Made by a program: the position numbers and the translations under genes
Assembly (NCBI GenBank): GCA_965637545.1
Contig: OZ281496.1
Coordinates: forward strand, 13,516,001-13,580,000
Source of the DNA: Phallusia mammillata
Lineage: Eukaryota
DNA: 64,000 nucleotides
Direction: 5' to 3'
Shown here: piece by piece, positions 5,952 through 42,750 of the stretch
How the letters are laid out: each line of letters opens with the position of its first letter
How positions within the stretch are numbered: position 1 is the first letter of the stretch
Notes under the pieces: generated by a model
The model's database searches: none
Seen by the model: only the letters and a program-made list of their open reading frames with translations
Told to the model about the DNA's origin: nothing

Positions 5952-6400
5952 CAGGCCCCACGAGAGGGGGGTGCAGCCGGTGCGCCGCACCGGGCCCCAT
6001 GAGAGTCTAGGGGGCCCATAATTATTAAGTTGAAGATTCCAGGGTGAAATGTGTACTTTTAAAATTTTAAAACTAAAAAATGTTGATGCTGATTGCCGAA
6101 TGTGGAGTTTGATTTGTTTGTAATGCAATTCTATGCAACAAGTTTTGTGATTGTTAGGTTGGTGCATGCGCGAATTGCAGCGAGATCTCTTTTTGATGTT
6201 TCTCCTTTTTTGTGCCACGGTTGTGTCCGTTGTTTGGTAAGAATTTTGCACATTTGCGCTGACTACATAGTGCTGGTGAGTTTTTTTGGACGTTATAATA
6301 GCATTTGTTACACGTATTTGATTTGGTCACAGCTTTGGTAGTGAGCGAGGTACTTTATTGGACCATATTTGTTAAAGTACATAAGCGATAAAGCGACAGT

Positions 6401-6434
<34 letters not shown>

Positions 6435-10700: not shown

Positions 10701-11400
10701 GAGTTGCACAGACACTTCAGCCCGATATACCAAAAATTGTCTGCAAAAAAAGATGTCAAACCTCGGGACAAAGCACTAATACTAACTGATAAGTAGCAAA
10801 TACCTGCTGCAGTTTTAAAATATAGTCTGTTTAGAATGATGTTCATAATACTGTTGGTCAGAACAAGTAGTGTAATTACTTCGTTGTCTGGTATTGATAA
10901 GTGTGATTAAAACAATTGTTTGCATCAAACACGAAATTGTGTGTCAAGGTATATAGCAAATTATCGATGAACAAATAGTTTGACATTACTGTATATGTGC
11001 CATTAGCTTGTGTGCTGCCCGGATGATTACATAACATGACGCATGCGGCCCTTGGAGGACTGTGAGTTTGACATGCCTGGTATAGCGTACATTGCTTTTC
11101 GCCACGAATTGAAACCCTCGATCCACTTTTTTCCCTGGCCGTCTAAAATATTTTTAACCCCTGGCCTTACGCGGTTATTTGCAAGAGCCCACGAACACAC
11201 GCTGCATGTCATTGCATCTTTTTCAGGATCATATTGGACCCATGTAAATTCTTTAGACAATTTTTCTTGAAACTTTCGGCCACCGGTTGATTCCTTTACG
11301 TAACCGCGGGCGGCGTCAGTGGTCATGGGCTGTGTGAGCAGAGTCATAGAAACAATAGAAGAACTTTCGGCTGTTTCTGCACCAGGCTGACTTGTATCTG
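7790..11400 (-). mobile_element. Degenerate ZMYM1-like (Tip100-group) hAT transposase, split by a Buster element
   Basis: Fragments RKFQEKLSKEFTWVQYDPEKDAMTCSVC (11027-11347), LYLARQGQSLRGHTEEESNF (8244-8519), SVIADETADISRKEQLSICL (~8160-8220) and YVYCAGHQINLVV (7764-8003). The frame rejoins as WRKAMYAIQKRNESSHH once the insertion is removed. Confidence 0.85.
8599..11079 (+). mobile_element. hAT Buster/SPIN-type element with frameshifted GTF2IRD2-like transposase
   Basis: TIR caggcatgtc / gacatgcctg; TSD gtatagcg (8591-8598, 11080-11087, central TA). ORFs 8948-9238 (CLIC..KEYNLKRHY), 9294-10634 (SIAIDES, TDGAANM, HCI, EVRWLS) and 10583-10789 (FGSTYVCEQLFS). Confidence 0.92.
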
Positions 11401-12079
11401 CCCTTTTCTCATCTTCCTCTGATTTTGCGCCGCACCCCCGTACTCTACGCCAGTGATTGCACTTATAGGTAACGAAGAGTGATTGGGGTATCTAGTGTTG
11501 CTGTGCCAAAGCCTCAAAACACGCTTTTTATATTCGTCCTGAATGTCATTAGTATCCTTTTTCCATGTAATGTTATTATACGTTCCCTTTCAAACGCAAA
11601 AAGCTTGTTCAAACTGTCACATGGGGAGAGTATGATTTTTCCAAAATAAGTTTATTTTGAAAAGGTTATTAGCGGATGTGTCATCAAACCCAATAAGAAC
11701 ATGGTTTTTAAACTACAAAGCAATTGCTTTTGCCAAATGATTTATCGCGTTTTCATTTGGCCCGCCAATTTTAATTTAAGGGTTGTTGCAAACTACATGT
11801 GAGCAAATTTGATTGTTTGAACCATTTTTATAATTGTTTTAGCACACACAAGATGCATAGGTAGGCAGAGAGAAGACACACATAAAGAAAGGAAGGAACA
11901 GCTGAGTCCTGTGGATTAGTAAAAACCCACGGCTAGTATTCATTCCTCTTGTCTGTATGCCTTGAACGTTGTTAGCTTTGTCGGAGCCGTTACCTTCACC
12001 GACGAAGGAGCTACCTTCGTTGGAGCTGTATTTTTTTTAGCTTTACTCTTTTACTATCTACGTTGGCGCAAAGTCTGCT

Positions 12080-17850: not shown

Positions 17851-20800
17851 CCTCCCTTTTGACTCTTTTTATCACGAAAAAGAGTAAACACATAATAATT
17901 ACAACTAGAGTATATTTGCGGTTGCGAAGATTATAACCGCCAGTGGAGCTAGGATCAAGCCCCATATTATCACATAGATTCTCATCATGTCCGGAATATC
18001 TGGGTTGAAGCTGGTCACAGTGTCGCCTCCATTTTAAACCTTCTGGAATGGTCTTGACCTTATAGCTTCTTTCACCAAATACTTTTGTAACCACCGCAGG
18101 CATCCATTTAGAATCAAGGGGTTGTCTTGGACCTGCCAATAGCGCGTAACACAAACTACCAATTTTATACTTGTCTGGTTCACATCCCGGTCTCCTCGAC
18201 TGTCTTCCCTGAGCTATGTGAGCCGGGGAAGGAAGCAATGTATCGATTTTCGTTCGAATTTGTCGTCCATTCAACAATTCGCTGGGTGAAAATCCACTGG
18301 ATAATGGAGTTCTTCTATATTGCATCAAGAACTCTTGAAGTGCTGCTCTTGGCAGTAACTTGGACTTTTTCAAAGCTTGTTTAAAAGATTGAACCAATCT
18401 TTCAGCTGCCCCATTAGTTGCAGGGTGATATGGTGCACCAGTAAGGTGAGTAATTCCCCTCTCACGGCACCAATCTTGAAATTCTTCTGACTTGAATGAT
18501 GTAGCATTGTCAGACACAATGGTATGCGGATATCCAAAATGTGAAAAGTCGTGTTCCAACAAAACTGTTGTACTTTTGGATGACACAGAATTCGTTGGAT
18601 GTATGCATGGATATTTAGAGTATGCATCCACAAGAACTAACCAATTACTTCCCATAAAATTAACAGCATGGTCTATATGAACTCTGCTCCAAGGTTTCTC
18701 TGGAAGCATCCAAGGATGATTAACAGGCTTTGCAGGTTTATTCTGCTGTAACATGCAGCTAGAACAATTTTTGCATGTCCTGGCAATATCAACATCAATT
18801 CTTGGCCAATAAACCACTGTACGGGTCAACTGTTTCATTCTTTGGATTCCAAAGTGACCCAAATGAAGTAATTGTAGCACTGGTTCTCTAAGCTTGTAAG
18901 GAATAACCACACGAGCTCCATAAAGTAAACATCCATTGGTTGTAGATAAATAACTGGAAAGTTTTCGAAAATCTTTCACTTGGTATCCTTCTTTTTTAGG
19001 TTGTTCTGTTGGCTCAACAGTCAATGGCCATCCCTCTCGGGTATACCTCATTACCGTAGAGACAACAGAGTCTTTTGAAGATTCTTTAATTAAAATTCTA
19101 GGATCTGTTGGAACTATCTGCATGCTAACCATATTAATGGTGTTTACCACATGGGTATTTTCCTCATCTTCTTCATTATCGAAGGTAGCATCAGGTCCTA
19201 CAGGCATCCTACTTAAAGCATCAGCATTTCCATGATCTGCAGTTTTGCGATATTCAATAGAATAATTATATTGGCCTAGCAATAATGCCCATCTGGCCAA
19301 TCGATTGGCTGCTAAAGCTGGTGTTGCTTTAGTCGGTCCAAATAATGCAAGCAATGGCTTATGATCAGTCACCAAAATAAATTTTCTTCCATAAAGAAAT
19401 TGGTGAAACTTTTGAAGTGCAAAAATAATGGAAAGCGCTTCTTTTTGAATTTGACTGTACTTTCTTTGTGTCTTCGTCAGTGTTTTCGATGCAGTTGCAA
19501 TAGGTCGTTCCTTCCCATCATGAAATCTATGAAATAGAACTGTCCCAATACCTACACTAGACGCATCACAAGAAATCCCTATTGGCACAGTAGGGTCAAA
19601 ATGAGCAAGTACAGTATCTGCACATAGCATTTCTTTCAGTGTCCGAAAAGCAACATCCTGGCTCTTACCCCATTTCCATTTAATTCCCTTCTGCGTAAGA
19701 AGATAAAGAGGCTCGGACACCGTAGACAAATTAGGTAAGAATTTGCTGTAAAATTGTACACAACCAAGAAAAGATCGCAAAGTAGCAACATCTGTGGGTG
19801 CAGGCATTTGTAGCACTGCACTCACCTTTTTTCCTTTCCTTATTCCCTCTGGTGACAGTTGATGTCCCAAATATTCAACACTTGATTTGGCAAATTCACA
19901 CTTTTCACGTCGACACCTTAATCCTTTGTCTTGCAGTCTCTGTAAAAGTGCACGAAGATTCTTCAAGTGATCTTCTGCATTGGCTCCGCTCACTAATATA
20001 TCATCCAAGTAAACTGCAACACCTGTAAGATCTGCCGTTAATTGTCCCATAATTTCTTGGAAGTAACCTGGTGCAGAACTTATCCCAAAAGGTAGTCTCT
20101 TTTAAAGTAAAACTCCTTGATGGGTGCTTAATGCAAGTTTTCTTTGACTTTCAGGACTTAAGGGTATTTGATTATATGCGTCTGCTAGGTCAATTTTAGT
20201 AAAACCATGTCCGCCTCGTAGTTTGCGCATTAGATCTTCAGGTAAAGGTAAGGGTTGGCGATGTGTTTCCAGTTGTGCATTCACTGTCACAGAATAGTCA
20301 CCACATACACGTATAGGTGGATTAACCTGTCCTGGTAAACACTTTTTCCATATAGGTACTACAGGAGTGCCATAATCATTAAATTGAACTTTTTCCCAAA
20401 CTCCTTTTGCAATACCAGCTGCATAAGCTTGTGACAGACTGTCCTGTAGGGCAAATGGGACTGGTCTGGGCTTGCAAAAAATTGGTTTGGCACTTTTCTT
20501 AAATTGTACATCAAGTTCAAAATTCTTTAAACATCCCAATTCATTTTTAAAAAGATCATGAAACTCATCACATAGTTGTGTACATGCCTTCTGTAGGGAT
20601 ATATTCGGTCCACCATTAACATGAAAATACTGTGGCATTTATCATTTGCTTCGTCAATTAGGGAATCAACTGAAAATCCCAATTTAGCAATTCCATCTCT
20701 GCCAAGTAGATTCAGATTTGGCACATCAGTTACAATAAAATTAATGTGACTCTTCATTAGCATATTTGAAGCAAGGCTTACTTGTTTTGGACAAATTTTT

Positions 20801-21946: not shown

Positions 21947-22019
21947 CGTGTGATACTTTAGTTGAAGAAAAGTAGCATAAACAAATTGCTTAAAACGTGA
22001 TCACTTAGATCGATCCGTA

Positions 22020-22032
22020 ATCCTCGTCGCCA
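22020..22032 (-). promoter_or_regulatory. Primer binding site, complementary to the tRNA-Ser(GCU) 3' end
   Basis: TGGCGACGAGGAT lies 3 nt inside the 5' LTR; animal tRNA-Ser(GCU) ends ...AUCCUCGUCGCCA (recalled). Confidence 0.85.
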
Positions 22033-22035
22033 ATC

Positions 22036-22226
22036 TGTTGTATTCGCCACTCACGCGGCCATGCCGTAATTCGAATAAAGCAAAAGGTCACACATAGTGA
22101 AATGCGGTAGAACGCAATCATGCCTATCAATAATAAATCATGCGTAAAATAATATATATGATGCTAACGTTACGGTCACAGCAATAAATAATGCGGTAAC
22201 AAAAGTAAATATACAATAACACAACA
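22036..22226 (-). repeat. 5' LTR
   Basis: Direct repeat of 17660-17850, next to the PBS. Confidence 0.95.
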
Positions 22227-22909
22227 ATATTCATCCGCGTGTAAGAATGTGCTTTGAACGCCACGTTTTTGTCAGTTCTGTTTGTTGGTAGAGTTTGCAA
22301 TCAGAACGATTTGTTCAAGATTAATTTCTTTGTGTTTATCGTTTAGTTAAATAATATATTGAAAAAACGAATATTTTATTTGCCAGATTGTCATTGTTAG
22401 ACCGTTACCCACTGATCAGTATAGCCTTGGCTACCAAACCCAACAGTCGGCAAATTCTAAATTCATTCGTGTTTAGCCAGTGTAAAGGTGTGTGTGAACC
22501 TAAACCAGTTTTGTAGTCAGTATTTTGAGGCCGTTTTTGTGTGCAAAGTAGCCGATTAACGGAGATTATATTAGATTGCACGACTTGAAACCCTGAACTG
22601 TTGATTCTGTTCTGCTGCAGCGGCTATGACGTCATAATCGTTGTGTTAGTTTATTTATTCTCTGTTCTCCTTATATTATTTTTACTGCTGCACTCTGCGT
22701 TTAGACTAAAGTAGAGATTGTTTTGATATACTTGTGAGGTGCCTGAGGTCAATAACAATAAAGTCTTAAAAAACTGCAAGGTAGTTTGCCAATTCAGTTT
22801 ATAATTGTACGCGAAAACTGGGCATCTATAAGTGCATTTTTTAATTCCCAATGTTTTAATATTATTTTGATATTTAGTCCGACGTTTCTTCAACTAGCTG
22901 AAACAAAAC

Positions 22910-24919
22910 ATGTCGGCCTCAAAACGTAAATTTATCGGTAACGAATATTTTACCGTTGTTAATTGCATTAATGGTTATGGGAAATGTGACGTTCAAGGCT
23001 GTGACTACAAGTACACACCATTGACAGCAAGCGGAGTACATTCAAAGCCTCTGGCTGACCATTTTAGACGAAAGCATTTCGAAATGTATGAAAAATGTGA
23101 AGAGAAAGCTAAGCGAAAAAGAGGGCAAGATCCGAGTGCAAGTGGTTCAATATCAGGACACTTTAATAGACCTCAAGGCAGAAAAGAAACTTCCCGTAAA
23201 AATACGACAATAAATTTCCAAACTTCTCCAGAAAAAATTCAAAACCTTGCCATTGAAGCGGTGACAAAAAAAGGTTTGCCCTTTTCAGTGTTTGAAAAAT
23301 CAGCTATCCAAAACCTGCTCAGCCCCATATTGAGAAAGACCGAAGTTTGCCTGAATCGTAGATCACTTCGTGAAATGACAATAAAAAAGGCACAGGAGCG
23401 AATTATCGAAATGCAGAATGAACTCAAAGGTCGACTGATATGCTTAAAAGTTGATCTGTGCACTCGAAAAGGTCGCCATTTTCTTGGAGTTAATGTACAA
23501 ACTATCGTGAACGGCAATTTAAAAGTATTTACGTTGACCGTGAAAGAAATGTTTGTGGAATCTACAGCGGAAGACTTAAAAGCAATGATAATTAAAACTC
23601 TGCGTACGATATCAGCAGACGAATCACAGATTTATACCATCACTACTGACAACGGATCAAATGTTTTAAAAAGTTCATGTCTTTTGAGGGACGATGCAGA
23701 AGCATGCGAAAAACCCCGGCTCTTAGATATTTACATCGGTGACACGTCCGACGAAAGTGATTGCTCCGACGACGAGTTTGTGCAAAACTCTGAAGCCACT
23801 CAGGACGTCGCAAGTCAAATTAACGTCGATGCAACGGTCGAAGTCATTTTGGATAATGCTGCAGGAAATATCGCAAATCAATCTAACTTGGATCAAAGTT
23901 TCAGCGTAGGTGTCATTAAGTGTGCAGCACATACTTTGCAGCTGGCAGTAAACGATGTTTTGAAAGAAAAATGTTTTCTGAGCGTTATCGAAAGAGTAAG
24001 AAAGGTTGTAAAGAAAACTCGTAACCAAAATCTGCGACTGGTCTTCCGCAGGCACAAACAGCCATTGCCCACTTTGGACTGTGAAACTCGCTGGGGTTCA
24101 ACATACTTAATGCTAAGTAGTGTGCTACGATGTAAAGAGTTTTTAGGAAATTTGGCGTTAACTAACGAGACCCTTCTTTTGAGTGATGAAGACTGGCTTT
24201 GTGTCGAAGGAATGATTTCCGCCCTAAAGCACATTTATTCCCTTACCAAAGTTCTTCAGTACAAATGCCTCACTGCTGGTTACTTTTTTGGTCAATGGAT
24301 CAAAACTAAATTACTGTTAAACTCAATGGATTCTTCCATTAGCTCTTATCTATTGCGAACAATGACCAGACGTGAACCGTCAATAATTGAAAATCCTCCT
24401 TTTCTTGGAGCAGTGTTTTTAGATCTTCGATTCCAAGGCTTGCTAAGTGAAGAACAAAAGAACATTGCCCATCGCCACGTCTTAACTGTTTGGAAAAAGC
24501 TTAAACGTATCGCTGCGGATGAAGAAAACCAAGTGCCACAACGCACCGCCCATGAAAGTCCCGACCACAATCTTGATTTTATTGCAGTAAGCGACGAAGA
24601 GGTTGCAGAAGGTTTGTTGGAGAATTTACTGCAAAGTAAAGAATCGCAAAGTAAAGATGGAAACCAGTCAATTTTGGAAACCATTAAATCATTCGGAAAT
24701 GGGTCGCGACTTCCAAAAGATGCGGACTTACTTTCATGGTGGGTCCACAACGGACCACCTGAGTTGTTACATGTAGCAAGCGCTGTTTTGGCGCTACCAG
24801 TTACCCAAGTTAGCGTCGAGCGCACCTTTTCGGGATTAAGATACATCCTGGATGAATTAAGAATGCAACTCAAAGACGACATTGTTGATGCAGTAATGAT
24901 ACTGCGTTGTAATACGTAA
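22910..24919 (+). CDS. hAT transposase (BED finger + DDE), intact, 669 aa
   Basis: GKCDVQGC..LADHFRRKH, LKVDLCT, TTDNGSNV, CAAHTLQL, TRWGS, TQVSVERTFS. Confidence 0.92.
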   Translation: MSASKRKFIGNEYFTVVNCINGYGKCDVQGCDYKYTPLTASGVHSKPLADHFRRKHFEMYEKCEEKAKRKRGQDPSASGSISGHFNRPQGRKETSRKNTTINFQTSPEKIQNLAIEAVTKKGLPFSVFEKSAIQNLLSPILRKTEVCLNRRSLREMTIKKAQERIIEMQNELKGRLICLKVDLCTRKGRHFLGVNVQTIVNGNLKVFTLTVKEMFVESTAEDLKAMIIKTLRTISADESQIYTITTDNGSNVLKSSCLLRDDAEACEKPRLLDIYIGDTSDESDCSDDEFVQNSEATQDVASQINVDATVEVILDNAAGNIANQSNLDQSFSVGVIKCAAHTLQLAVNDVLKEKCFLSVIERVRKVVKKTRNQNLRLVFRRHKQPLPTLDCETRWGSTYLMLSSVLRCKEFLGNLALTNETLLLSDEDWLCVEGMISALKHIYSLTKVLQYKCLTAGYFFGQWIKTKLLLNSMDSSISSYLLRTMTRREPSIIENPPFLGAVFLDLRFQGLLSEEQKNIAHRHVLTVWKKLKRIAADEENQVPQRTAHESPDHNLDFIAVSDEEVAEGLLENLLQSKESQSKDGNQSILETIKSFGNGSRLPKDADLLSWWVHNGPPELLHVASAVLALPVTQVSVERTFSGLRYILDELRMQLKDDIVDAVMILRCNT

Positions 24920-25689
24920 CTTTCGCGTGACGTGTAATTGTCTTTACGTTCTTTTATGTTTAAGTTATTCGGAACCGGTCACCTTTTTTATTTAAACTGA
25001 TGCAACGAAGCGTAGTTTTGGAAAACATTACGTTTGCGAGAATTGGATTTTCGTTTGTTACGACTTGTGTTTGCTATTTGTTGCTTCTAATTTTAAAAAG
25101 TTATTAAATTAGTGGAATGTAATTGAATTTCATATTTCACCAACAAAATAAAACCAACTGATGACTCATTAGCAATGCATATTGAACAAACCCATGTTGG
25201 GCTACATTTTAGATACCGCTTTTATCAAAGTTAATTAAATTAGATTTTAATCCGCCTTTTTCTAGGTACGGTACGCAAAAAACGTACCGTACCCCAGGTA
25301 CGGTACGGTGGTACGGTTCCGTTTTTTACATTTGGTACGGTACGCCCTTCGTAACGAGGTACGTACAACTGTAGGCGTACCGTACCGTACTGACATCCTT
25401 GCACAGGAGTATGTAAGACTGCCATTGTATGCCAAAATATAGGTATTTAAATATAAACATAGGTAAGCCGTGTTTGAGTATTTTGGGCAACCCATACAGG
25501 GTGGGCGTGATGGCCGAGGTGGGATGTATCTCCAGCGGTTTCCCAAATAAGCAAATATGGCTATTTTTGGGTATTTAAATGAAACACTTGCGGTCTCTTA
25601 AAACTACTTAGCGGTCACCAAAACCAAACTAAAAAAAACCTGTCTGCATATTTAAACTTTTGCAAAATTACCAATTTGTTAGTTTAGCC

Positions 25690-26490
25690 ATGTACTCAGG
25701 TGATTTTGAAAAGGCTGTAAAAATGTCCAGACTGGCAGAAGAAACTTGAAATTTAGAAAGTGGAGATGGGGACGAGGAAGTGTCAAGATCTAGGAAAAGG
25801 CCCACAAGGTTTGATACCTCTGATGAGGAAGAAAGTGTACCCCAAAAAAGGATGAACACTGTTGATGAACTGATGTTTTATCTGATGTTTGTTCTATTGT
25901 AGACCGAAATAAAAAGGGACCAGTGTTCAGCCAGGATCTTACAGATTCATTTCAAGGTTCGGGTGTGTCTAAGATTGTATAGCAAATGCTTTGTAAAAAC
26001 TTTTTATGCAGTGCATTTTGTACAGATGTCACAAATGAGGAAATGGATAGTATGGTACAAGCAGGAACTATTGAAAAAAGAATTGAACCAATAACTAGAT
26101 GTACTATTCATGGGTGATTGTACTGTTTTTGTTTGTCTGTTTCTGTCAAATTATGGCTGACATGTGTGGCCATTGTAACTCATCAGTTTATTTGTGTAGC
26201 CTAAAAGTATACACCACAAACCCTTAAAAGGTAACAACTGAACTTGTTGATTTCACCCTTGTTTTTTGTGCAGTATGAAATATGTGAAGAATTGTCTATG
26301 TTTCATTTATACTTGCAGAAAAAATTGATACAGTACTGGCACAACAAAAAAAATAATGGAAATGCTGCGGGCGAAGCAGCAGGATAGTGAAGATGCCAAT
26401 ATTTTGTTCGAAAATCAAATGAATACACAGGAAGATTTTGATCGATTGGAAATTAAACTAGAAGAAAGACAATTCCGCAATGCATCAGTA
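25690..26490 (+). pseudogene. Multi-exon relic resembling DUF4806-type transposon accessory proteins
   Basis: Exons DFEKAVKMSRLAEET*NLES..RKRPTRFDTSDEEES and QMNTQEDFDRLEIKLEERQFRNA; the family assignment is from recall only. Confidence 0.35.
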
Positions 26491-26880
26491 AGTGGATGCT
26501 GTTTCTCTTCCACGGGGTCATATTGACCATGGACGTTTGGGCGAAAGTTCGGCAACGTCGACTTTGTGGTGTTAGCACTTGGCTCTAACGACGTTGATTC
26601 AGGCAAATCCATCGCCAGCGTCGAAGCAGCTTACCGAAGCTTGGTTGAGGCGTCTTGCAGCGTGTATCCCCAAGCGCAGGTAGAATTGAGATAAAGTGAT
26701 TTACGTATACACAACAGTCAAGTGTTAAATGATCAATATAGACGTTCTTCCTGGACTTATCATCGGCCATAATCGAGAGCTTTGGCACGACCGCCTTCAC
26801 TTGTCTGACGTCGGTTTGCGTCATTACATGGCCAGTCTTGAGGCTCATATTCATGCCCTTCTTGCTGCTTCCAGCGTGCC
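26490..26880 (+). pseudogene. SGNH/GDSL hydrolase-like gene relic (copy 2)
   Basis: DAVSLPRG, DFVVLALGSNDV, GT donor after YPQAQ, then LWHDRLHLSDVGLRHY; homologous to the 12 kb copy. Confidence 0.7.
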
Positions 26881-26927
26881 AAGTAAATACTCATTAAATA
26901 CTTTTGTCTCAACAAGAGGTTTGATGG

Positions 26928-27416
26928 ATGATCCCGAAATATAGTCCTAAGATATTTCAATTTTTAGAGAAGTTATCCGATTTTGCCGAAAACAACGCGA
27001 CAAAGGAAACAAAAAAGAAGAAATTCCGAAGTCGGCTGTGTTTTGGATGTGTGGCTGATCACATTCGCCCCTCACCCAGAAAGGTCAATTTGCGGATTTC
27101 CCAGACGCCTTCTTCCATCTTTGGTGCCATCACAAGAGTTTCTGTTGGTGGAGCACAGGGTAAGGTGACCTTGGTTGCTGGACCCCCGCGCAAAGCCGAC
27201 AGTGGAGCAAAGGGTAATGTGACCTTGGTTGCTGGACCCCCGCGCAAAGCCAACCGTGGAGCGACAAATACAGAAAAGAGTTCAAGAGTTGTGTCATTTC
27301 TGGTACCCATACTCAACGTCCTCGTACTTGCAATAATCTGTCTTGGCCTGTTTACTTTGTTTTATTTCGCATTTATACTTGTGATCTGCCACGTCGGTTT
27401 CGTGGATCAGTGTTGA
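26928..27416 (+). CDS. Small basic protein with 18-aa repeats and a C-terminal hydrophobic (TM-like) segment
   Basis: 162-aa ORF with GA(Q/K)G(K/N)VTLVAGPPRKA twice and the hydrophobic tail FLVPILNVLVLAIICLGLFTLFYFAFILVIC. Confidence 0.35.
   Translation: MIPKYSPKIFQFLEKLSDFAENNATKETKKKKFRSRLCFGCVADHIRPSPRKVNLRISQTPSSIFGAITRVSVGGAQGKVTLVAGPPRKADSGAKGNVTLVAGPPRKANRGATNTEKSSRVVSFLVPILNVLVLAIICLGLFTLFYFAFILVICHVGFVDQC
27148..27262. repeat. 54-bp tandem repeat (about 2.1 units)
   Basis: gtggagca.agggtaa.gtgaccttggttgctggacccccgcgcaaagcc repeated. Confidence 0.9.
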
Positions 27417-27449
27417 AGCGAAAGCAAAGTGGTCAAAGAAAACATCATC

Positions 27450-28545
27450 GGAGAAAGAAATATTTAAAACAACAACCAGGTGTCAATTTGCATTTTTGTT
27501 CTCGTTTGCTACAACTGCCGACATTTTTTAAAACTGGGGGTGGGCCACATTTACACATTACTTATACGAAACCCGACAGCAGGCGGCACACCACTGCCAG
27601 TTGCAAAGGGTGTAACGAGTCACCACGACGCCAATACAATTAGCCACTTTTTGTAAAACTTTTTATTTGATGCGGTAAAAGTGTGTGGGACAGCAAGAAA
27701 ACCAAAATTAGTAGTAATGGATGGCTCAATGGCAATGTTACAGAGTTGTAAGAGGTGTACCTGGCGATTCCGACCTGCAAAAAACATTTGTTACCAATTG
27801 CTATAGCCACCCTATGAAAGCAGCAAAAATTTTACAAAACTTTAGTTACAACCTATTTTTTTTGGATAAACGTCATGTTTTCGTGCTCGACCGTTAAAGA
27901 GTTAGACGAAGCATTAGAAAGTTTTTTTTTATTTTAACCAACAGTGAAGCTTCTTCCTCATTGGTCCAATTACATTTCAAAAGGCTTAAGTCGTTCGGTT
28001 CGACAATGACGGTGAAACAGTTACAGAGGAAACCGACTATTTTTTTTACTGCAAAAGCATTGGACAAATTACAGGAACGCCATTCGCCATTTTACATCAG
28101 ATACTGACGTAAATTAGATACCGTTCTAGAAACGATATCTGATTCTATGCCTTTGACACCGAAACATAAAAATGTGTACAAAAATTCTGAAATTTCTAAC
28201 AAGGTTTTGGAAATAACTTTAAGCAGAATGTGTTCAACTTCAAAATTAATGCTTGGAGATATGTCCATACATATGCACAAAGGCACAACGTCAAATGACC
28301 AATCGCAAATGTACAAACAACATAGTGATCACTGCAATAACCTTAAACAACTGGGCCATCAAACTATTTTGCAAAACAACCGGACGCAGGGGATTATTGA
28401 ACAACATTTTGGAGATTTAAAAACAAATGTGATAGACGGGAAACGAATAGCTAGAATTGATGATTTTGTTGTAAAGTATTATCAAGCCATACTGATTTTG
28501 CAAAAACTTTTTTCTGATTCTTACATTTACCTCATGTCCAAATAG
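27450..28545 (+). mobile_element. Degenerate Mutator-superfamily transposase of NOF/Foldback type (copy A)
   Basis: YTLLIRNP..PLPVAKGVTSHHDANTISHFL, PKLVVMDGSMAML (D), CYSHPMKAAK (CxxH), NNRTQGIIEQHFGDLK (E); many stops and frameshifts. Confidence 0.7.
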
Positions 28546-28899
28546 AAATCATCAAATTTGTCGAGCAAGAAACTATTGACGCCTGTGGTGGAATCCAAGT
28601 TTTTTTTTCAAAAATAAACGCAAAGCCACAAGTTATTATTCTTCAGATTCTGCTTTAAAGCAGTTACAATACCGCTATGAACCGACGCTATGAACCGATG
28701 TACAATACCGATGTGCTTTTTGCCCTTTTTTTGACCCGGAAATAATGATTTCAATTTGCAAACCTGTTGTAGATTTTATTTGGCACCAAATTCTCCACAA
28801 CACCCACTCCATATTTGATACAGCCATAATCACCAAACGGCGCCATTCATTGTCATCTTTGGGCAAAACGTATTCCGCTTACTGAAAATTTTGCGCGTT

Positions 28900-30263
28900 C
28901 TCACAACGATGCGATGCTTGTGTGGTTAACAGATAAAGTTGTAGATTGCTATTGTTACTAGAACTGTCGCTATATGTAATTCTGTTTTACCAGGTAAATT
29001 TGCATGTGTGTCAAGTGTTTTAGCTGCTGAAATTTTGAATGGAAAAACATTGAGAAACTTGCAACGGACTTTGGGTTGAATAATAAACAATGACGGACAG
29101 ATATGTGAAAATGTTGTTTTACCGGTTTTGTACGAAAATCATTTTGTTGTGCTGTGGTTCAGTCAGCTGACTAATACACTGTTTTTTTACGATTCAAACG
29201 TTCGTGCTAACGATAAATTGAAACGTTTAATTAGACAACACATGATTCCAGCGTTTAAATCCCTTACCAGCCAAGACGTTTTATTGAAAGGTGATTGCAA
29301 AGTTTTCCAGCAAGATCAGTCTAGTTGCGGGTTGTGCGTCTGTTACACAGTTGATCGCCTTGCATCAGTCATTCTTAATATGGGCCATGCGAACTTTGAC
29401 GTTACAAATTATCGAATTTGGGTGGTGTACGCATTAGTTCAAGACTCGTTAAGTTGTAGTTTAAAAATTAGGACCTCTACGAAACAAAAAGTTATTGTTT
29501 CAGTTGGTTTGCCGAACAAGTTTAATAACTGCTGGATGAACTCTGTACTGCAGAGTATGCGAAGCTGTTTTGTTGATTTGCCCAATGATAATAATCTCGA
29601 AGAGAGAGTCGCGAACGTAATTTGTGACCTCCGACTCGGCAAAGTAGAAGAGGCTGCTTACTTTGGATTGGTTCGCGATATGTGTTGTCATCTTGGTTGG
29701 GTTCTGTAACTTTTTGATTTCCAATCTGTTTTTAAAACTTGTAATTTGGATTGTACGTTTCAATTTCACACAACGAAAACTTGCAAGTCATGTGGCAGAG
29801 AATCTAAATTTGTTAATGACCAGTCAGTGTTAGCTCTACCAGTTTTTGAAACAATTCCAGACAACAGCAACATAAGCGCATATTGTAAAAGGAATTTAGT
29901 GGAATAAGTCTCGGCTACTGTTGTTGTTGTAACGTAGAAAATGAAATCGTCTTTGAATCGCGACTTGATGATCTATCCGACATTTTGTGTATTGTATTGC
30001 ACAGAAACGCGACAGGTCAAAAAATAAACAGACCCGTAAAGACGACGAAAACTTTGTCATTTTGTTCCGCATCCGAAACGCATGTTTATCAGTTGTTGTC
30101 GGTTGTAATTCACGTCGGATCGAAAGTTGATTCAGGTCATTACATCATTTATGAATTTAATGGCGATAACGTGACTGAACTGAACGATTTGTCGGTCATG
30201 GATATGTCTTTGGACTGTGTTGGGGACAAAATTTCTACTGGAGTTTGCATTTTGTATTATTGA
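28900..30263 (+). pseudogene. Ulp1/C48 SUMO protease domain fused to a USP/C19 deubiquitinase domain (transposon cargo)
   Basis: WLTDKVVD; NHFVVL..FFYDS..QQDQSSCG (H-D-Q-C) and GLPNKFNNCWMNSVLQ (USP Cys box) lie in one ORF (29128-29709); CKSC finger; YQLLSVVIHVGSKVDSGHY..ELND (His box) in 29985-30263. Confidence 0.8.
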
Positions 30264-30739
30264 AGACGTGCAATAAATTCTGATGGTCACTCCAGTGAAA
30301 GTGACGATAGTCAACCTACGATTAAGGTAGTGCCTAGGAAGCGTCGTCGCCTCCACGCATCAACCGTTGAAACAACGGAACGAATAGTTTACAGGAATAT
30401 AGATTTTACGCAGTCAGACAAGGAAGAGGTAGTGGCGCTTTCTGGTCCAGAGATACTTGAAGCTTCCGTAGCAGAAGTTTACGAATTTGTCCGCTATGTC
30501 AAAGTCGTTTGAGGTCGGCAAACATGAACTTGAGTGTTTTAAAATGTAAATTTATTACATGTAAATTTATACCATTTTTTGTTATGTGAATTGGCATTTA
30601 TACATTTCAAAAACATCTTAACCCTGAAATATTGAATGAATGTATATTGGAGATTGTGTGTTAATTAGTTTGCACTGTTGCGGTAAATCAACCGTGCACA
30701 TCGATACTGCTGAACATTATATAAGTATTCGATAAACAT

Positions 30740-31255
30740 ATTATTCGCTGAAAATTCTTCGCTCCAAAACTTCATTATTACTATATTGTTACCTATGCTC
30801 TGGTGTACATCTGTGCCCAATTTTATAAATTTCTCATTTTCGGACAGTGTTTGAATTAAGTTGCAAACGTCAATAAGTTGTGTCACAGGGCGATTATGCT
30901 GTGCTTGTTAAAATACAAGTGCTGAAGAAAAAGTTATTTTGCTGAAAATTCTTTAATCGCTCCAAATATTCATTATTACTATGTTGTTAAGTATGCTCTG
31001 GTGTACCTCTGTGCCAAATTTTATACATTTCTTATTTTCGGAAAGTGTTTAAATTAAGTTGCAAACGTCAATAAGTCGTTTGTTATGTCACAAGGCGATA
31101 ATGCTGTTCTTGCTAAAATACATGTCTTGAAGAAAAAGTTATTTTGCTGAAAATTCGTTAATCACTTCTAATATTCATTATTACTAAATTGTTAAGTATG
31201 CTCTGGTGTACATCTGTGCCAAATTTTATAAATTTCTTATTTTCGGAAAGTGTTT
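30740..31255. repeat. Tandem repeat, about 2.6 units of ~190-200 bp
   Basis: gctgaaaattc..ttcattattacta..tatgctctggtgtac.tctgtgcc.aattttata..ttttcgga.agtgttt recurs near 30745, 30940 and 31145. Confidence 0.85.
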
Positions 31256-31399
31256 ATTTGAGCAGCAAGTGCGGAAAACGCTAAAAAATAAAAAGACCAT
31301 GCGTGTATGTAATGATTTTTTTTGTTCTTTGCATGTGATTTGCGACTAATACAATCTGACGGCATTGCATTTGAAGCTTGACTTCAGCCATTATCAAAA

Positions 31400-32366
31400 A
31401 GGCCACAAAAACTACCATTCGATTGTTGTAAAAAGGTCATTAACGGCTATTTAAAGCCTTGTGCAGTGGAGCGTATAAAAATTCTCTTTTGGGCACAGTT
31501 TATTCTGCCAGAATGACAATAGTATGTGTTTGCCACCAACACTTCACACGCAGTTTGGAAATTGCCAAAACTGGTCGAAATCTTCGGCAATTTTAACCAA
31601 TCTTGCCTAGATGGAATAGACATGACCTCGTTTAGCAATGTCTCCTATATAGCAGCACATGTTTCCGGTACAGCATGGCATATTATCGATTTTGATGTTC
31701 GGAAGGATGCGGCAAATGTGGAATAAGAATCGCCAGTGGCTAAAAAACTACAAAACAGCAGAACGGCTTTATAATCGCAGGCTGATTGTAATTTTTTAAA
31801 GCCCACCGAAACGTCAGTGCAAGGTGTTCTTCAACGGAAATGCATGTTCATAAATGAGTTGTTTGTTTCTTTATCTTACGTCCAATTTTTTGCGCTAAAA
31901 ATCAAACGCTTCTGGCGTCATTCGAAAATAGGTCCAAAACTCGGAAAGTCTTTCAAAGCGTAACCCCAAAATTAAACGAGGAAATTCACCTAAAAGAAGT
32001 ATGATTAGCTTAAAAAATCAAACTGTTTTTTCTGTATGAAACCTTTCTTAACTTACCAAGTTCGGTCCCTCGCTGCAAAATCGGATGGACTCGCCACCGA
32101 CGCGCCCGTCGTTTTTTAGAGCCATTCTCCTAGCTATCAATAGCAAGGCTACGTTTCTATTTTTTGCACTAACCATAATACAAATATGTGTTCGTCTTTT
32201 ATTGTGTCAGTAAAAAGAACTATGAATGACAATGCTTCTTGTGCGACAATAAACAACTAATAAGCTTGCAATATGCAAGTCACGCGAAATTGTTACCAAT
32301 AGTGCAAACAGTTGATCACTTGCGCGGCGTGCCGCATTGCGTCCTGTGTTTTGTGTCAACGCACCT
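31400..32366 (-). mobile_element. Degenerate Harbinger element (HARBI1-like transposase plus one TIR)
   Basis: FLATGDSYSTFAASFRTSKSIICHAVPETCAAI..IPSRQDW at ~31540-31745; end gtgtcaacgcacct followed by taa (Harbinger-like TIR and TWA target). Confidence 0.7.
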
Positions 32367-33989
32367 TAATTCCGACCAGTCTGTCTGAAATGCAGAGCGC
32401 GTGATGAGCGAAAACATTTTTTTTCCTTCCAATGTAAATTAACGTAAACGCTTCCAAGGCATATCTTCACGTGAAAACTTGAAACTCACACGTCCCTTTA
32501 TCTTTATGCTGTTTTGTTACCTTATTCGTACGCTGCTAAACGTTCTGTTCTAACAAAAAATTTTGCATTATTTGTAAGCTGTTAAACATTTGTGCCGTGC
32601 TGTTTTACCAAAATAGGAAAAATACGTATTACTTTAATTTGGGGCCGACACAACACGAATGATACGTCCTGGCGCCACTGGGTCTCCTTTTTGATTTATC
32701 ACATGAAGAACCATTAAACGATTGCTGGTTTCAGGTCCCTGAAATCGAAAAATTCCCCATTTCAGGCCCAGTTGTCACCATAGCAGGCGATGGGGCAGGA
32801 CAGTCATTGCGTTTGACCCCAGTGATTGTTACAATCTAAAAATCTGAGCCTCCATTGCTAAAAAATGTACTGATTGATTACGCAAACAAAAACAAATGGG
32901 CTGCCACACACCAGTGAGATTGGTTATGGGATTAAAATGGTACACATTATTTTAGATTCATAAGGACACAACAGTAAACTAAACCATCAACTTCAAACTA
33001 CTAATTTTTTTTAGTCAAATTAACTTTACGTCATTCTATTGTCATATTTTTATACTCATGAGTATACTGTGGTTAAACCGTTCATTGTTATGTCATACAT
33101 TCAACAGATAACCAACACATGTAAAAGAATTTTCGCACCGAACACACATACATCGCATTCACCGTGTGGTCTAGCTGTCGTTTTGGAAGCGATGCTACAA
33201 ACTTTGTGCGACAAAATATCTCTGGTTCCATTGCATTTAATGGGAAAGTTAGAATACGGGTGTTGGGAATGATTGTAAACACGCAAGGGAGGTGCGTGCC
33301 AGCTAAATATGGTAAACTGATTAAGAATATATCACCACACTTTAAACTGCTGGCTTTTCCCTGTGCGTCAAAATTACTTTTATACCACAAGTAAAGAAAC
33401 TGTTCTAATATTATCTTTTAACAGTATTCCTTCAGCAGCTAAGATATGACATCTTCACGCGAGTCCGATTCTGGAACTGATGTTTCAAGTTTGGACGTTC
33501 CTTCGGAATCATCAGATTTTGATGTTTGTTTCAGACATACAAAAATTGTTATATATATATATATATCCAATATATATATAGAAGTGTGTGCAATAGCATG
33601 TATGTTTGTTTGTGGTACAGGCTATCAAAGAAAAAAGAAGGTTCATTGTAAAAGGTATGCCATCTGTTCTGTAAGGTTAAATAATCCATCTGTCCCCTTC
33701 TAATGTTTACATTTGTGCAGAAAATGCACATGCAATACTGTACTTGTATTTTGCTTCGTGTAGTTTGCACATTCGCAGTTCCTTCATTATTTTATGACGG
33801 AATGGGTCCTGTGCAGTAGTAGCAGTGGAGGCGGTAGAAGATTGCAAAAACCGCGGTCAGCGATATATAAATGTAACACATCACAGAAAAAACAACATCC
33901 TAATATAAAGAAAGAGGAGTTCCTGTATGATAGCCAGCTAAAAGTAACAATTGAAAATTTTGCAGGTTTTCATTGCTGTTAGGGTTGTA

Positions 33990-35000
33990 AAATGGCTAGA
34001 GAGCCACATAAAAACATGCATAAGAAGATGATGATGTTAAATAACTCAGAAATAAAGAAGATGAGAAGTGGGTGCGATCTTGGACAAAGCAGACTAAAAT
34101 CTATTTTGGCAAGATATCAAATATGCATGATGGAAATCGGCAGTGGAAAGAGACAGGCAATAGATGAAAGCACAGCAAAAATTTACTGTAAAAAATATCT
34201 TGCTTGCTGCAAGATATAAACACTTTACACCATCCCTTACAGGTTTATAGAAATTTGTGTGAAAGGGTGAACCGTGAGGGGAAGGATGGTACAAAATATG
34301 TCTATTTGTCTACCATTTTAAATTTTTGGATTTTCTCCAATTGGAATATAATGAATGCAACAAAGGTGCAGTAAAGGGAATGAAAGTGTATGTAAAGGAC
34401 TGGTTGTTAAAACAGAGAAAGTTATATGAAGAAGAAAGCACGAATAAACCTTGAAGGCTTGGAATTTCCATTGAATAGTGAACATAAAAAGGAAGTGGAA
34501 AAATTGATGCACAAAAGCCTTCTTAAACTGGACTCGACAAAACAATATGTGGCAGCATGTTTTCACGCATAATATGTAGACTTGCATGCACACATAGGTT
34601 GTAGACATGTCGTTCATCATTATTTACTGGAATGAAAATCAAAGAACTTCATGAAGCTAAAACAGTTGAAGAAGGGATGTGGCGAATATTGGTGGAAGAA
34701 CAAAAACGACATGGGGCATAGTTATATCTGAAGAATTAAATGCTTTATATTAATACCCGCATTTGGGTGTATTCAAAAAGCAACTGCGAGGAGCGAGGCT
34801 TTGTTTTCCCATCATTCTTTGGAAAAAATGCTAGCAAAACATGTCATCCTCCCAATTCAATGCAATATTTTTGAAAACAACCCCACACATTTTCGACAAG
34901 GCACTAACTGTGACAGAAATCAGAAAACTGATAGCCACGAGGATGAACCATATCCGCGCTGAGTTTGAATTCTTGTCAAAAATCCGACTCAAGCAGAAGC
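33990..35000 (+). pseudogene. Tyrosine-recombinase-like relic
   Basis: CRSSLFTGMKIKELHEAK..WRILVEEQK, GFVFPSFFGK..MSSSQF..LTVTEIRKLIAT resemble the R, K and xxxRK boxes of animal YR proteins; the terminal H/Y box is missing. Confidence 0.5.
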
Positions 35001-35149
35001 TGATGACGCTGTACGGCCGTTATACTTCGTGCATGAGCGAGAAAAGCACCTTTCTGCACTATGAAAGTATTGTGAAATGAATACACACAAGAACTAGAGT
35101 CAAACAACACTATCCATTAAATTTGCTGGTAACTAGTTCACCCAACGGC

Positions 35150-35581
35150 ATAGTCACAACTACCTACCGCAAGCCCACCCGCAGTGGACTCTAAAGCAAG
35201 TGGGATAGTTTCGTACCACACCACCATAAACGCAACGTCGTTAATTGCCTCCTTGAACGGGCATATAACATCTCAAGTTCCTTCAAATTTATGGACCTAG
35301 AGTTTGGAACAGTAAAATCCATACTTGCATTCAATGGATACCCTGCACCTTCCTTGACGGATGTATCAAAGGATTTCTCAACAAATGCCACCATCACACC
35401 ACAATTCGATCGGAAATCACACATTTTGTGACCATGCGTCTGCCATTTGTAGGCTCTACTTCATACAACATAGCGCGAGAGTTGAAGTGATTTGTGAAAC
35501 ACACGATACCTAATGTGGGGCTAAGTGTTATCCACAAACCGACAAAACTTGCAACAACCTTCGCTGTAGTGTTGCATACTG
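35150..35581 (+). mobile_element. Penelope-like element fragment (RT C-terminal region)
   Basis: TYRKPTRSGL*SKWDSFVPHHHKRNVVNCLLERAYNISSSFKFMDLEFGTVKSILAFNGYP. Confidence 0.75.
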
Positions 35582-36910
35582 CAGGGGTGTGCAACCTTTA
35601 TTACAGGAGGGCATAGGCTTTCTGGCAGTTGCAGACACAAAACTAGTTTCTTAACGCTATTGATCTGATGGCATCGTTATGGGGTAACCTCCTTGCAAAA
35701 ATAATAAGTTAAGACGCATAAAATACTGAAGAAAACTGCTATCCAAATTTGTTGTCACACCAATTTAGTGAGAAATTTGCAGCTGACTTCTTTTCCCGCC
35801 GAAAAATTTGTTTTAATGGATGTGCTTGCAATTCGAAGTCTATTTTTAAGTGTTCGTCTGTCAAAGCCGATCGATAGGGGGATTTCATGACGACCATTTT
35901 TGAAAAAAAGTTGTTCGCACAAATACGTTAAGCCAAAAAGGGCCATTTTTGAAGGCATAAATTTGTTTAAGTGTGGAAAGTTTCCTGGGTTGAGATGTTT
36001 TCGGTAAAAATCGCCAAGATTCATTTCTAGATACTTTGCTTTCAAATAAGTATTCTCAAAAGATGATTAATCAGTCCAAGTTGGATATCAACTGGTGCTT
36101 TGTCAACGTCTGTGTTGAATGGCGAAGAGAATATTTTGAACAGATGTTCATGAGATTTGAAGTTTGTCACACGAGACAAAGCTTCATACAACAATTTTTC
36201 AAGTTGGTCTGCAAATTCAGTTTTTTTCTAAGGATGCATTCCACAGTTTCTCAAAGTTGGATATTGGAAAAGATTTCCTGTCTGTATGTGAGCTTTGCAC
36301 AGTAGTAATTTGTTCATGAAACCTTTTATGTGACCATACATTTCATTTCCATACTCGCTTTTTCGCTGGAATCTTGTATTAAGTTCATCTGGGTGCGTTG
36401 TTATATCAACTAAGAAAGCTAGATCACATAACCAATTTTCGTCTAACATTTCATCTACTGGGTGCCTTTGAAGTTTCAAAAAAATCGCGACTTCTTTCCG
36501 CAGTTAAAAATCGTCGCAACATGCAGCCCTTGCTTAACCAACGTACTACGGAAAAGTACACTAGATCTTGATGTGTAGTGTTGAGGTCATCCAGAAATTT
36601 TGGAAACTAACGCCCGCGTGCTCGAATGAAATTTACTGCCTTCATTACCGGGGTCAAGACGTGTTTGAATTTTGAGGACTTTGCACACAATCATTTTAGG
36701 GCACGTTTCTTGTGCTTATCGATAAGACACTGCTTTACAAAATTACCTTCGGAATATTGTTTCATAGTTTGAGCTATTTTCTGTGCAATTAAGTAACTAC
36801 ATCGGTCTGCTTTTTCGTTATCGCTATTTATTTTTTGAATCATCGAACGCTGGCTTTTTAATTCTTCCTGCATTTGCTTTGCTTTCATCTTTCTGTTTTG
36901 TCTGTCTAGC

Positions 36911-41069: not shown

Positions 41070-42750
41070 AAGCCTTTGTTTTGTAACATCAGGAAAAGTA
41101 CATTTTAGCTCTTTGTGTTCGCATGGAACAAGTTTAGATAAAATCAACTGATCGTAAGGGCTATACTCCGCATCAGGGGCGCTGTCATAAACAACAATCG
41201 TTTGTTTGTTTGTTTGTTGAAAAAATATTAGATACAGTTACTCAGTGATTTCCGTGTATATACCGGGTTTCTATCCGCAAACTTGGAGGAAGCCAAACAA
41301 CTTTGTAAACCCATAACATTCGGAAACTGCTGTGCCAACATGTGCATTGCCGAGTCGATGCGCGAACCATCTAACCATTCATCTGCTTGCAGCAAATCCG
41401 AAAGCTTGTCAGCATAGCAGCGTCTCGCCAAACAGTCTTTCGGCATGCGACAGCTACAACTATCGTGTTTGTTTGTCTAAAATCTGTTTTCTTTTACTCG
41501 TACAACCCCGACGGTCGTTTACAAGGGCTTGCATATACTTGCCTACATTCTTATTTGGAGTCGCTACTCTTGTTCGCTTGCTCCACCTTTGCTCAAGCTC
41601 TGACGACTCTGTTGTTGTTCTCTTACGTTTTGCTCCTACTCTGAACCCATCTTCATACACTGCTGAACAAGTCCAAGATGCGTATCTGCATAAAGCTGTG
41701 CAAACTCATGCAGGCACTTGAACCACACAAAACACAAATGCAGAAACGGCTTTGCAAGCATTTCTGCGGTTGCCTTCCCTGTTACAACATGAAAACCACG
41801 AGTAAAATAGGTTTCCAAAGTTTTCTGAAAAAACTCAGCCAAAACAGATTGAATCAGGGGAACACTACCGTCGCAAATTAAAGGGCTGGGCGCGTTTTCC
41901 CACAAATGTTGTTTGCGTATCTTAAAAAAGGCCATAAAAAATGTTTAATTGATGTTGCATTGTGAGAATTTGCGATATACGTTCCTACAGCAATCGGTAC
42001 TCTACTTTTGTGTGGATGGCGTACGACGATTTCGTACGGCGTAAAGTGGTTTTAGCAACACCTGTGATTGTACCACATCCTGTTGCATCAATGTAGGCTG
42101 CATAAAAAGTCAAAACCTGCATCTTTTGGGCTTTCTTTTAAATCTCTCCCAAAATTTGCAGTTGAATCACTGTTGCCTGACACAAAAGCATTATGAGATA
42201 TAACATGCCGCAAAATTTTTTTCAAGTCAGCGCGATGCGAACCTTTCAGTAATCATTCGTTGTTTGATTCCATTTTTGTCTCGATACGAAAGTATTGTTT
42301 TCGTTACGGTTTGATGAAAAGTAAATTGGTTTGCTATCCGAAATAACGGTATTGGTCACGCGCTTAGCCTCACATGAATTATTTCTAGATAAAAAGATAT
42401 ATTTTCAACAACAAGTTCTCGATGTCGTCAAGACCAAAAATAATCTGTAACCGTACCTTTGGCTTGATGGCTTTTCACCGTCTTTAGCTGATGCTCTGGA
42501 ATATCGGTGTTTGTTTCTTTGAGCAATTAATATGGACGTCAAAAACTTACATATCGTTCCATATGTCAAATGTGTTGTCAACAGCTTTTTGCATCAGGAA
42601 GCCCTGCTCAATGGGACTTAGCGAGGTTGACCGAGTATTGATAAGAGGAGGCTCTTCTTCTTCGAACCAACCTTCCGCTATCTCATTGTGGGGACCCTTG
42701 CTCGCACTGCAATATAGGAATATGTCAACTGAATAAGCACAGTTGCTCAA
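41070..42750 (-). mobile_element. Degenerate NOF/Foldback-type Mutator transposase with Ulp1 domain (copy B)
   Basis: YIDATG, YEIVVRHPHKSRVPIAVGTYIANSHNATSIKHF, PLICDGSVPL, FLHLC; then DEWLDGSRIDSAMHMLAQQFPNVMGLQ and IVVYDS..DVTKQ (Ulp1, truncated before the Cys). Confidence 0.7.

Follow-up and report, generated by a model that had tools for sequence, protein, structure and literature searches.

Proteases that remove ubiquitin or ubiquitin-like modifiers are already known from several groups of transposable elements: Ulp1-type domains occur in Mutator, Ginger1 and hAT-type elements, OTU domains in Ginger1 and Helitrons, and a peptidase of family C19 is found together with an IS5-like transposase. 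To our knowledge, single Ulp1 or OTU domains have been described in transposons since about 2006-2010, and a role of these proteases has never been shown. Here, we analyzed a 64,000-nucleotide stretch of the genome of Phallusia mammillata (GenBank assembly GCA_965637545.1, contig OZ281496.1, positions 13,516,001 to 13,580,000 of the forward strand), in the following called the window, with its first letter as position 1. Sequence comparison suggests that positions 27468-30512 of the plus strand are, in all likelihood, a dead copy, truncated at its 5′ end, of a large DNA transposon that is of the cut-and-paste type and belongs to the Mutator-like element (MULE) superfamily. Intact relatives of this copy are predicted to encode a transposase, a C48-like protease with an Ulp1 fold and a USP (C19) deubiquitinase within one open reading frame (ORF).

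Mutator elements with an Ulp1 domain have been reported from plants (KI-MULEs, and MULEs of melon, rice and Arabidopsis), hydra and lancelet (PMC2836005). They have the C48-type protease in common with the family described here, but they contain a single protease type, lack a USP and reside in other hosts. The protease gene of the plant elements stands apart or has been captured and does not lie within one giant ORF. Ginger1 transposases, which are found in marine and freshwater invertebrates, carry either OTU or Ulp1 at the C-terminus (Bao, Kapitonov, Jurka 2010, PMC2836005), and a role of the ubiquitin/SUMO pathway in transposition has been proposed for them (PMC2836005). As in the present family, the transposase of Ginger1 shares a single ORF with a cysteine protease of the deconjugating kind; however, its integrase-like DDE transposase belongs to another superfamily, and it is combined with one protease, either OTU or Ulp1, and never with a tandem. 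In Trichomonas vaginalis, an IS5-like transposase is fused to Peptidase C19 (XP_001314237.1; PMC2836005). This fusion resembles the present family in joining a DDE transposase to a USP, whereas it belongs to another superfamily, comes from a protist host and contains no C48 domain.

With respect to overall architecture, two further groups have to be considered. FB-NOF of Drosophila, listed as MULE-NOF by RepeatMasker, is a foldback element in which long inverted arms made of tandem repeats surround a large coding core, and NOF is not known to contain protease domains. By description, this foldback architecture is like that of two elements related to the window copy (L003 and L002, see below). 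Rehavkus elements are related to MULEs and possess a PHD finger, subterminal tandem repeats within long inverted termini and a 9-bp target-site duplication (TSD) (PMC6446971; bioRxiv 10.1101/2024.12.02.626372). They are similar to the family described here in having a DDE domain close to that of MULEs, one ORF and long inverted termini with tandem repeats (as in L003 and L002), but they are described with only a PHD finger and a minisatellite, without mention of protease domains, and from arthropods and annelids (PMC6446971; bioRxiv 10.1101/2024.12.02.626372). A C48-USP tandem fused to a transposase was not found to be described in the open literature, Repbase and Dfam aside. Within this scope, the statement of a preceding reading of the window, made from its letters (the sequence-only reading), that Ulp1 and USP had not been described in tandem holds.

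Intact relatives and the two protease domains

In the window copy, the catalytic residues of the C48-like domain and the Cys box of the USP lie within a single stop-free stretch (29080-29706). The in-frame passage from one protease into the other, as claimed by the sequence-only reading, was thereby borne out. About 70 residues separate the Cys of the C48-like domain (clan CE) from that of the USP, and the linker between the domains is short and of low confidence in the structure model. An exhaustive HMMER search with the 209-amino-acid junction piece against 1.84 billion representative proteins yielded only 28 proteins with E values of 0.001 or below; in at least 12 of them, the alignment extends from the C48 part into the USP Cys box (P0001-P0005, P0008, P0010, P0012, P0013, P0015, P0016 and P0022). 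No canonical host SENP was found among the 1.84 billion representatives at E 0.001, and the sole host USP obtained was USP38, which matched via its Cys box alone. Since the junction is in one frame in the window as well as in at least eight independent proteins, the USP is not a neighbouring host gene.

The complete architecture is seen in P0016, an uninterrupted ORF of 2074 amino acids on a 13.6-kb Tara marine metagenome scaffold (L001). It comprises, in this order, a PHD finger (residues 504-534), a DDE transposase (D986, D1060, C1106/H1109, E1327), a basic linker near residue 1398, the C48-like domain (H1625, D1642, Q1681, C1687) and a complete UCH domain (1752-2032, Pfam E 9e-20; C1760, H1991, D2008). 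The ancestral transposase-Ulp1-USP polyprotein postulated by the sequence-only reading is thus represented by an intact single ORF. The order of transposase, C48 and USP recurs in P0051, P0030 and in P0045 together with its downstream ORFs, and the C48-USP pair is also present in P0008, P0013, P0060 and P0061. All full-length members keep the CE His, Asp (or Asn), Gln and Cys as well as the USP Asn, Cys, His and Asp, and the identity between members in the protease part is only ~30-35%. At 90% identity, the clusters hold 18-45 member sequences, which indicates that the elements are multi-copy. The sole named relative is an uncharacterised RefSeq protein of the sea squirt Styela clava, LOC120329920 (P0056), which comprises the PHD and transposase parts. 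The PHD finger was matched by Pfam in P0048 (E 2.7e-5; 24.5 bits, above the cut-off of 24), P0056 (E 7e-5), P0016 (E 1.4e-4) and P0046 (E 0.004). Judged from these sequences, the ORF of the intact relatives is ~2000 codons long and consists of a low-complexity N-terminus with the predicted PHD finger, a Cys/His-rich region, a DDE domain with CxxH motif and long insertion domain, a basic linker, the C48-like domain, the USP and a tail resembling a nuclear localisation signal (NLS).

For the C48-like domain, His, Asp, Gln and Cys are conserved in 18 aligned relatives, with Asp occasionally replaced by Asn, and a profile built without window rows matched 29080-29706 with E 7e-45. When the family profile was compared with sequences of the PDB, the NEDD8 protease SENP8/DEN1 was the best match, with E 0.0017 and with all four catalytic residues aligned. 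An AlphaFold model of P0016 residues 1490-1755 (predicted local distance difference test, pLDDT, 87.8; predicted template modelling score, pTM, 0.88) matched yeast Ulp1 (1euv) with E 2e-8 and a template modelling (TM) score of 0.73. SENP2 (TM 0.73), SENP8 (TM 0.77), SENP1 and XopD were matched as well, the scores for Ulp1, SENP1, SENP2 and SENP8 ranging from 0.72 to 0.77. Every one of the nearest ESM Atlas clusters of this domain is Peptidase_C48, and several represent fusions in other transposons. Hence, the Ulp1 fold and the active site are confirmed by structure model and profile comparison. The Pfam results speak against this assignment: the best score for Peptidase_C48 (PF02902) was 18.4 bits (E 0.002; P0008:1-290) and that of P0001 was 16.7 bits, both below the cut-off of 20.7, and the pieces of the window gave no Pfam match to MULE or C48, even at E up to 10. 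In favour of the assignment, Pfam gave ElaD/SseL-like_C within the family (E 0.0019), besides the match to Peptidase_C48 at E 0.002. Candidate substrates of the C48-like domain would be SUMO, NEDD8 or ubiquitin, so that the deSUMOylase named by the sequence-only reading would be one candidate activity; by fold, SUMO-specific, NEDD8-specific and dual-specificity enzymes match about equally.

For the USP, Pfam UCH (PF00443) matched window positions 29889-30260 with E 3.8e-8 and 33.7 bits, above the cut-off of 23.9. The USP His box was found downstream, where the sequence-only reading had placed it. The Cys box of the window copy alone reached 17.1 bits, and relatives reached 63-89 bits over the full profile. 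A model of P0013 matched USP46, USP30, USP35 and USP12 with E about 1e-18 and TM scores (by target) of 0.68-0.74. Taking profile and model together, the predicted identity of this domain as USP is secure. Of the two protease families named by the sequence-only reading, C19 was supported by a Pfam score over the cut-off, whereas C48 stayed just below the Pfam cut-off and was supported by the SENP8 profile match and the Ulp1-like model.

The window DNA is AT-rich (36-42% GC), eukaryote-like and contains no N. The relic is made up of stop-free pieces in three frames that together form one decayed gene (Table 1); the searches used these pieces individually, and none of them bridged over a stop. 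By tblastn, residues 993-2072 of P0016 are colinear with 27468-30509 of the plus strand, and the same colinearity was seen with P0051, P0045, P0030, P0008 and P0013. The copy contains at least five frame changes and at least seven internal stops (27654, 27895, 28105, 28543, 29077, 29707 and 30261). Homology has its 5′ limit at ~27507-27519; the N-terminal ~990 residues, the first 350 positions of the profile, which are conserved, the PHD finger and any left arm are missing from the window. Because of the loss of the N-terminus and of the left arm, the Asn at the position of the first catalytic Asp, the stops and the frame changes, the window copy would be incapable of the activities proposed below. 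It is a fossil, one further dead locus. Self-comparison of the window revealed no second copy of the protease part.

Table 1. Features of the relic and of its surroundings in the window (A4 is the transposase profile built from relatives; aa, amino acids)
Feature	Position	Strand	Evidence	Sites and remarks
Transposase core, piece 1	27468-27653	+	tblastn P0016 993-1071; A4 profile E 4e-13	First-D site reads N at 27513-27515 (in CYNCRH), then conserved HIYTLLIRNP block
Transposase core, two overlapping frames	27657-27894	+	A4 profile E 1e-7 and 3e-13 (27718-27894)	Second catalytic D 27720-27722, in VVMDGSMAM (27711-27737); CxxH in NCYSHPMK (27796-27828), C 27799-27801, H 27808-27810; frame change near 27733-27755
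Insertion domain and catalytic E	27898-28542	+	A4 profile E 2e-34 (28108-28542); tblastn P0051, P0045, P0016	Catalytic E 28399-28401, in NNRTQGIIEQHF (28375-28410); bounding stops 27895, 28543; inner stop 28105
Basic linker motif, KRK..YYSS block, third frame	28580-28690	+	tblastn P0016 1404-1424, P0051 388-410	
Ulp1/C48-fold cysteine protease domain	28830-29480	+	HMMER relatives, profile vs PDB, structure model	N-terminal helical part divided over frames: WLTDKVVDCY 28923-28952, stop 29077; catalytic half in one frame: His 29140-29142 (ENHF), Asp 29191-29193 (FYDSN), Gln 29308-29310 and Cys 29326-29328 (Q.D.SSCG)
USP/C19 deubiquitinase domain	29497-30260	+	Pfam UCH; tblastn P0051 578-876 E 1e-24; P0013 model	Cys box 29506-29553 (Cys 29530-29532); zinc-ribbon CxxC 29782-29796; His box 30087-30152 (His 30138-30140); Asp 30186-30188; stop 29707; one frame change near 29890-29905; stop 29905 in abandoned frame
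C-terminal acidic/basic tail	30264-30512	+	tblastn extends to P0016 2072 (at 30371) and P0008 614 (at 30407)	NLS-like PRKRRR 30333-30350; 30510-30512 probably the original stop codon
~205-bp tandem array, 2.5 copies	30744-31256			235 bp 3′ of ORF
Another short relic from this transposase family, around second D	41639-42051	-	tblastn P0016 1004-1107 (30-36% identity); A4 profile E 4e-10, 3e-9	
GDSL/SGNH-hydrolase-like piece	26527-26691	+	Pfam Lipase_GDSL_2 E 3.9e-4	
Basic ORF of 162 aa with hydrophobic/transmembrane tail	26928-27416	+		Contains 54-bp tandem repeat, 2.1 copies, 27148-27262

A further conserved feature is the basic linker between transposase and C48-like domain, ESKFRK..KRR..G-YY..S (P0016 1398-1425; window 28580-28690), which occurs in every member covering the region; the linker motif is kept in P0016, P0030, P0024 and P0012. 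This linker may serve as an NLS or as a site of processing. In L003, the coding linker between transposase and protease harbours a 123-bp tandem repeat (9468-9818; 2.9 copies, 92% matches).

Transposase class and foldback arms

On the plus strand (27468-28542), the second Asp, the CxxH motif and the Glu were found in order, and the A4 profile, which was built from relatives alone and without window rows, matched four pieces of the window with E 2e-34 to 1e-7. The transposase is thus located where the sequence-only reading had seen it. The D-D-CxxH-E layout with a long insertion domain is present in P0016, and the window shows the same order of blocks, with Asn at the first Asp. The CxxH motif also occurs in some other superfamilies and is therefore supportive, not exclusive. 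In a language-model neighbour search, a lead-level method, the ten best Pfam-annotated neighbours were all MULE or ZSWIM1-3 RNaseH-like proteins, with a top score of 0.91. On the basis of these features, together with weak Pfam matches to MULE at one and the same profile region of two members, the transposase very probably belongs to the MULE superfamily.

Several results weigh against this classification. The best Pfam MULE (PF10551) match, found in P0016:930-1250, reached 15.8 bits (E 0.019) and stays below the cut-off of 27.6; P0046 scored 14.8 bits (E 0.041), and both proteins matched at profile positions 25-85. A word search with the A4 profile yielded members of the family and P0072, a distant protein without a name, but no named MULE, NOF or Rehavkus protein. 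There is no solved relative of the transposase, and a comparison of the A4 profile with PDB sequences gave nothing meaningful. No terminal inverted repeat (TIR) was found in the window, where the region 22000-36000 around the relic contained only chance-level inverted pairs, and there is none around the ORF in L001 either. In addition, no TSD of the 9-11 bp typical of MULEs was recognised at the termini of L003, where the flanking 9 bp differ, and the 205-bp array next to the window copy may not belong to the element.

Concerning the closer affiliation, for which the sequence-only reading had proposed the NOF type, the PHD finger and the inverted arms built of repeats would fit Rehavkus and foldback/NOF elements about equally, both having been compared by description. 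Among the features of Rehavkus, a PHD finger was found in the relatives (the corresponding region is missing in the window) and repeat-bearing inverted termini in L003 and L002. In L003, arms of 2565 nt with 91.7% identity (4560-7121 / 16223-13662) are inverted around the ORFs and consist of 207-bp tandem units in 13.8 and 11.4 copies, the element measuring ~11.7 kb. L002 carries inverted 194-bp arrays on both sides, the left one being interrupted by the insertion of a long terminal repeat (LTR) retrotransposon. These two related elements are of the foldback type, with kilobase-long arms of roughly 200-bp repeats. The sequence-only reading had suggested a search for intact copies with TIRs and 9-bp TSDs; long inverted repeats were detected in L003 and L002, whereas no TSD was found at L003 and neither feature in the window. 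In DNA comparisons of L001, L002, L003 and the window, the coding cores alone align, at ~65%, and the termini are not definable in this way. On the L001 scaffold, the 2074-amino-acid ORF has no bracketing arms; downstream of it lies a near-perfect palindrome of ~450 bp (11272-11728; arms 11393-11437/11563-11607, 98%), and upstream an unrelated 2.2-kb element with 59-nt TIRs (33-2209).

Directly 3′ of the ORF of the window copy lies the array of ~205-bp units, a unit length that fits the 194- and 207-bp arm units of L002 and L003. There are about even odds that this array is the stump of the right, repeat-built arm. Close to an even chance also has to be given to the explanation that it is part of another repeat, either a satellite or an element with the SGNH-hydrolase cassette located upstream of the relic, in or beside which the MULE fragment has landed. 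In contigs of two public sequencing runs, which were compared for joins and word depth, 27122 is linked to 30960 through 7 other letters and the relic is skipped, a form that exists elsewhere in the organism, and the word depth of the 205-bp unit (30969-31115) is ~25x that of the relic, which corresponds to a satellite-like abundance; however, a high depth would also be compatible with an expanded repeat-built arm, as in Rehavkus of Tribolium. Similarly, the array has no inverted partner in the window and no sequence likeness to the arms of L002 and L003, but shared arm sequence is not expected between members at ~65% coding identity.

Possible roles of the protease pair

The fusion in one frame and the retention of both active sites over deep divergence argue for a role in the life cycle of the element and against captured cargo. 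Since both active sites are kept inside the element and in frame with the transposase, both activities probably serve the element itself. In such a scenario, the transposase would carry both proteases into the nucleus, where they would remove ubiquitin-like and ubiquitin marks from chromatin, from factors involved in silencing or repair or from the transposase, and this deconjugation would favour expression, excision or repair. We tentatively propose such mark removal by the protease pair as a possible main role; the sequence-only reading had suggested a candidate anti-silencing or anti-degradation device. The role of the proteases is directly accessible to experiments through intact natural copies, P0016 among them.

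A narrower version, in which the C48-USP tandem acts as a counter-silencing module at the element's own locus, appears doubtful. Here, the PHD finger and the DNA binding of the transposase would bring the tandem to chromatin; SUMO would be stripped from the SUMO-dependent silencing machinery of heterochromatin and PIWI-interacting RNA (piRNA), and histones or repair factors would lose their ubiquitin. If true, the tandem would correspond in animals to the anti-silencing proteins of the plant VANDAL elements, and the element would be the first transposon known with two different deconjugating enzymes in one protein.

Alternatively, the CE-clan protease could mainly process its own polyprotein and thereby free the transposase and the USP, with deSUMOylation of host proteins not being its main role. 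Proteases of this clan that process polyproteins are known from viruses, namely adenovirus adenain and the proteases of African swine fever virus (ASFV) and poxviruses (C5, C57, C63), and the ORF is very long and multi-domain. Moreover, a small residue followed by an aromatic pair (G/S, then YY/FY) is invariant in the linker of P0016, P0030, P0024, P0012 and the window. However, the nearest folds and sequences of the C48-like domain are the cellular Ulp1, SENP and DEN1 and not the viral processing enzymes, and the sequences read have no conserved Gly-Gly site at the borders between the domains. The spacing of ~70 residues between the two catalytic Cys, with its short linker, furthermore suggests a fixed tandem. 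Taken together, self-processing as the main role is regarded as quite unlikely.

Very unlikely is a domesticated host gene, i.e., a chromatin regulator composed of PHD finger, transposase and proteases, of which the locus would be a decayed paralogue. The gene model LOC120329920 of Styela clava with its PHD and transposase parts and the long conservation of the protease sites would be in line with domestication, but the foldback arms around the ORFs of L003 and L002 and the multi-copy clusters at 90% (18-45 members) are features of a mobile element. The same applies to the two relics and the transposon debris within the window, and to the many near-identical and diverged contig pieces that cover the stretch in a DNA run.

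That the USP, or both proteases, belong to an unrelated host gene or were inserted separately beside a MULE relic, the case by which the sequence-only reading would have been refuted, is extremely improbable and is excluded by the intact homologues sharing the domain order: although the window copy is in pieces divided by stops and has no bracketing TIRs, the stop-free junction recurs in relatives, P0016 contains everything in a single ORF, the arms of L003 enclose both transposase and protease ORFs, and the junction search returned no host SENP at its threshold and USP38 by the Cys box alone.

Neighbouring features in the window

Besides the relic, the window contains further remains of genes and transposons. 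Upstream, 26329-27416 of the plus strand is occupied by a cassette different from the transposon relic, to which the GDSL/SGNH-hydrolase-like piece and the basic ORF of Table 1 belong. The second short relic of the transposase family lies on the minus strand. Finally, 18198-20585 displays 66-70% DNA similarity to the pol region of the LTR retrotransposon in L002 (RVT_1, RNase H and integrase; 2843-5206), which points to a Ty3/gypsy-type pol relic.

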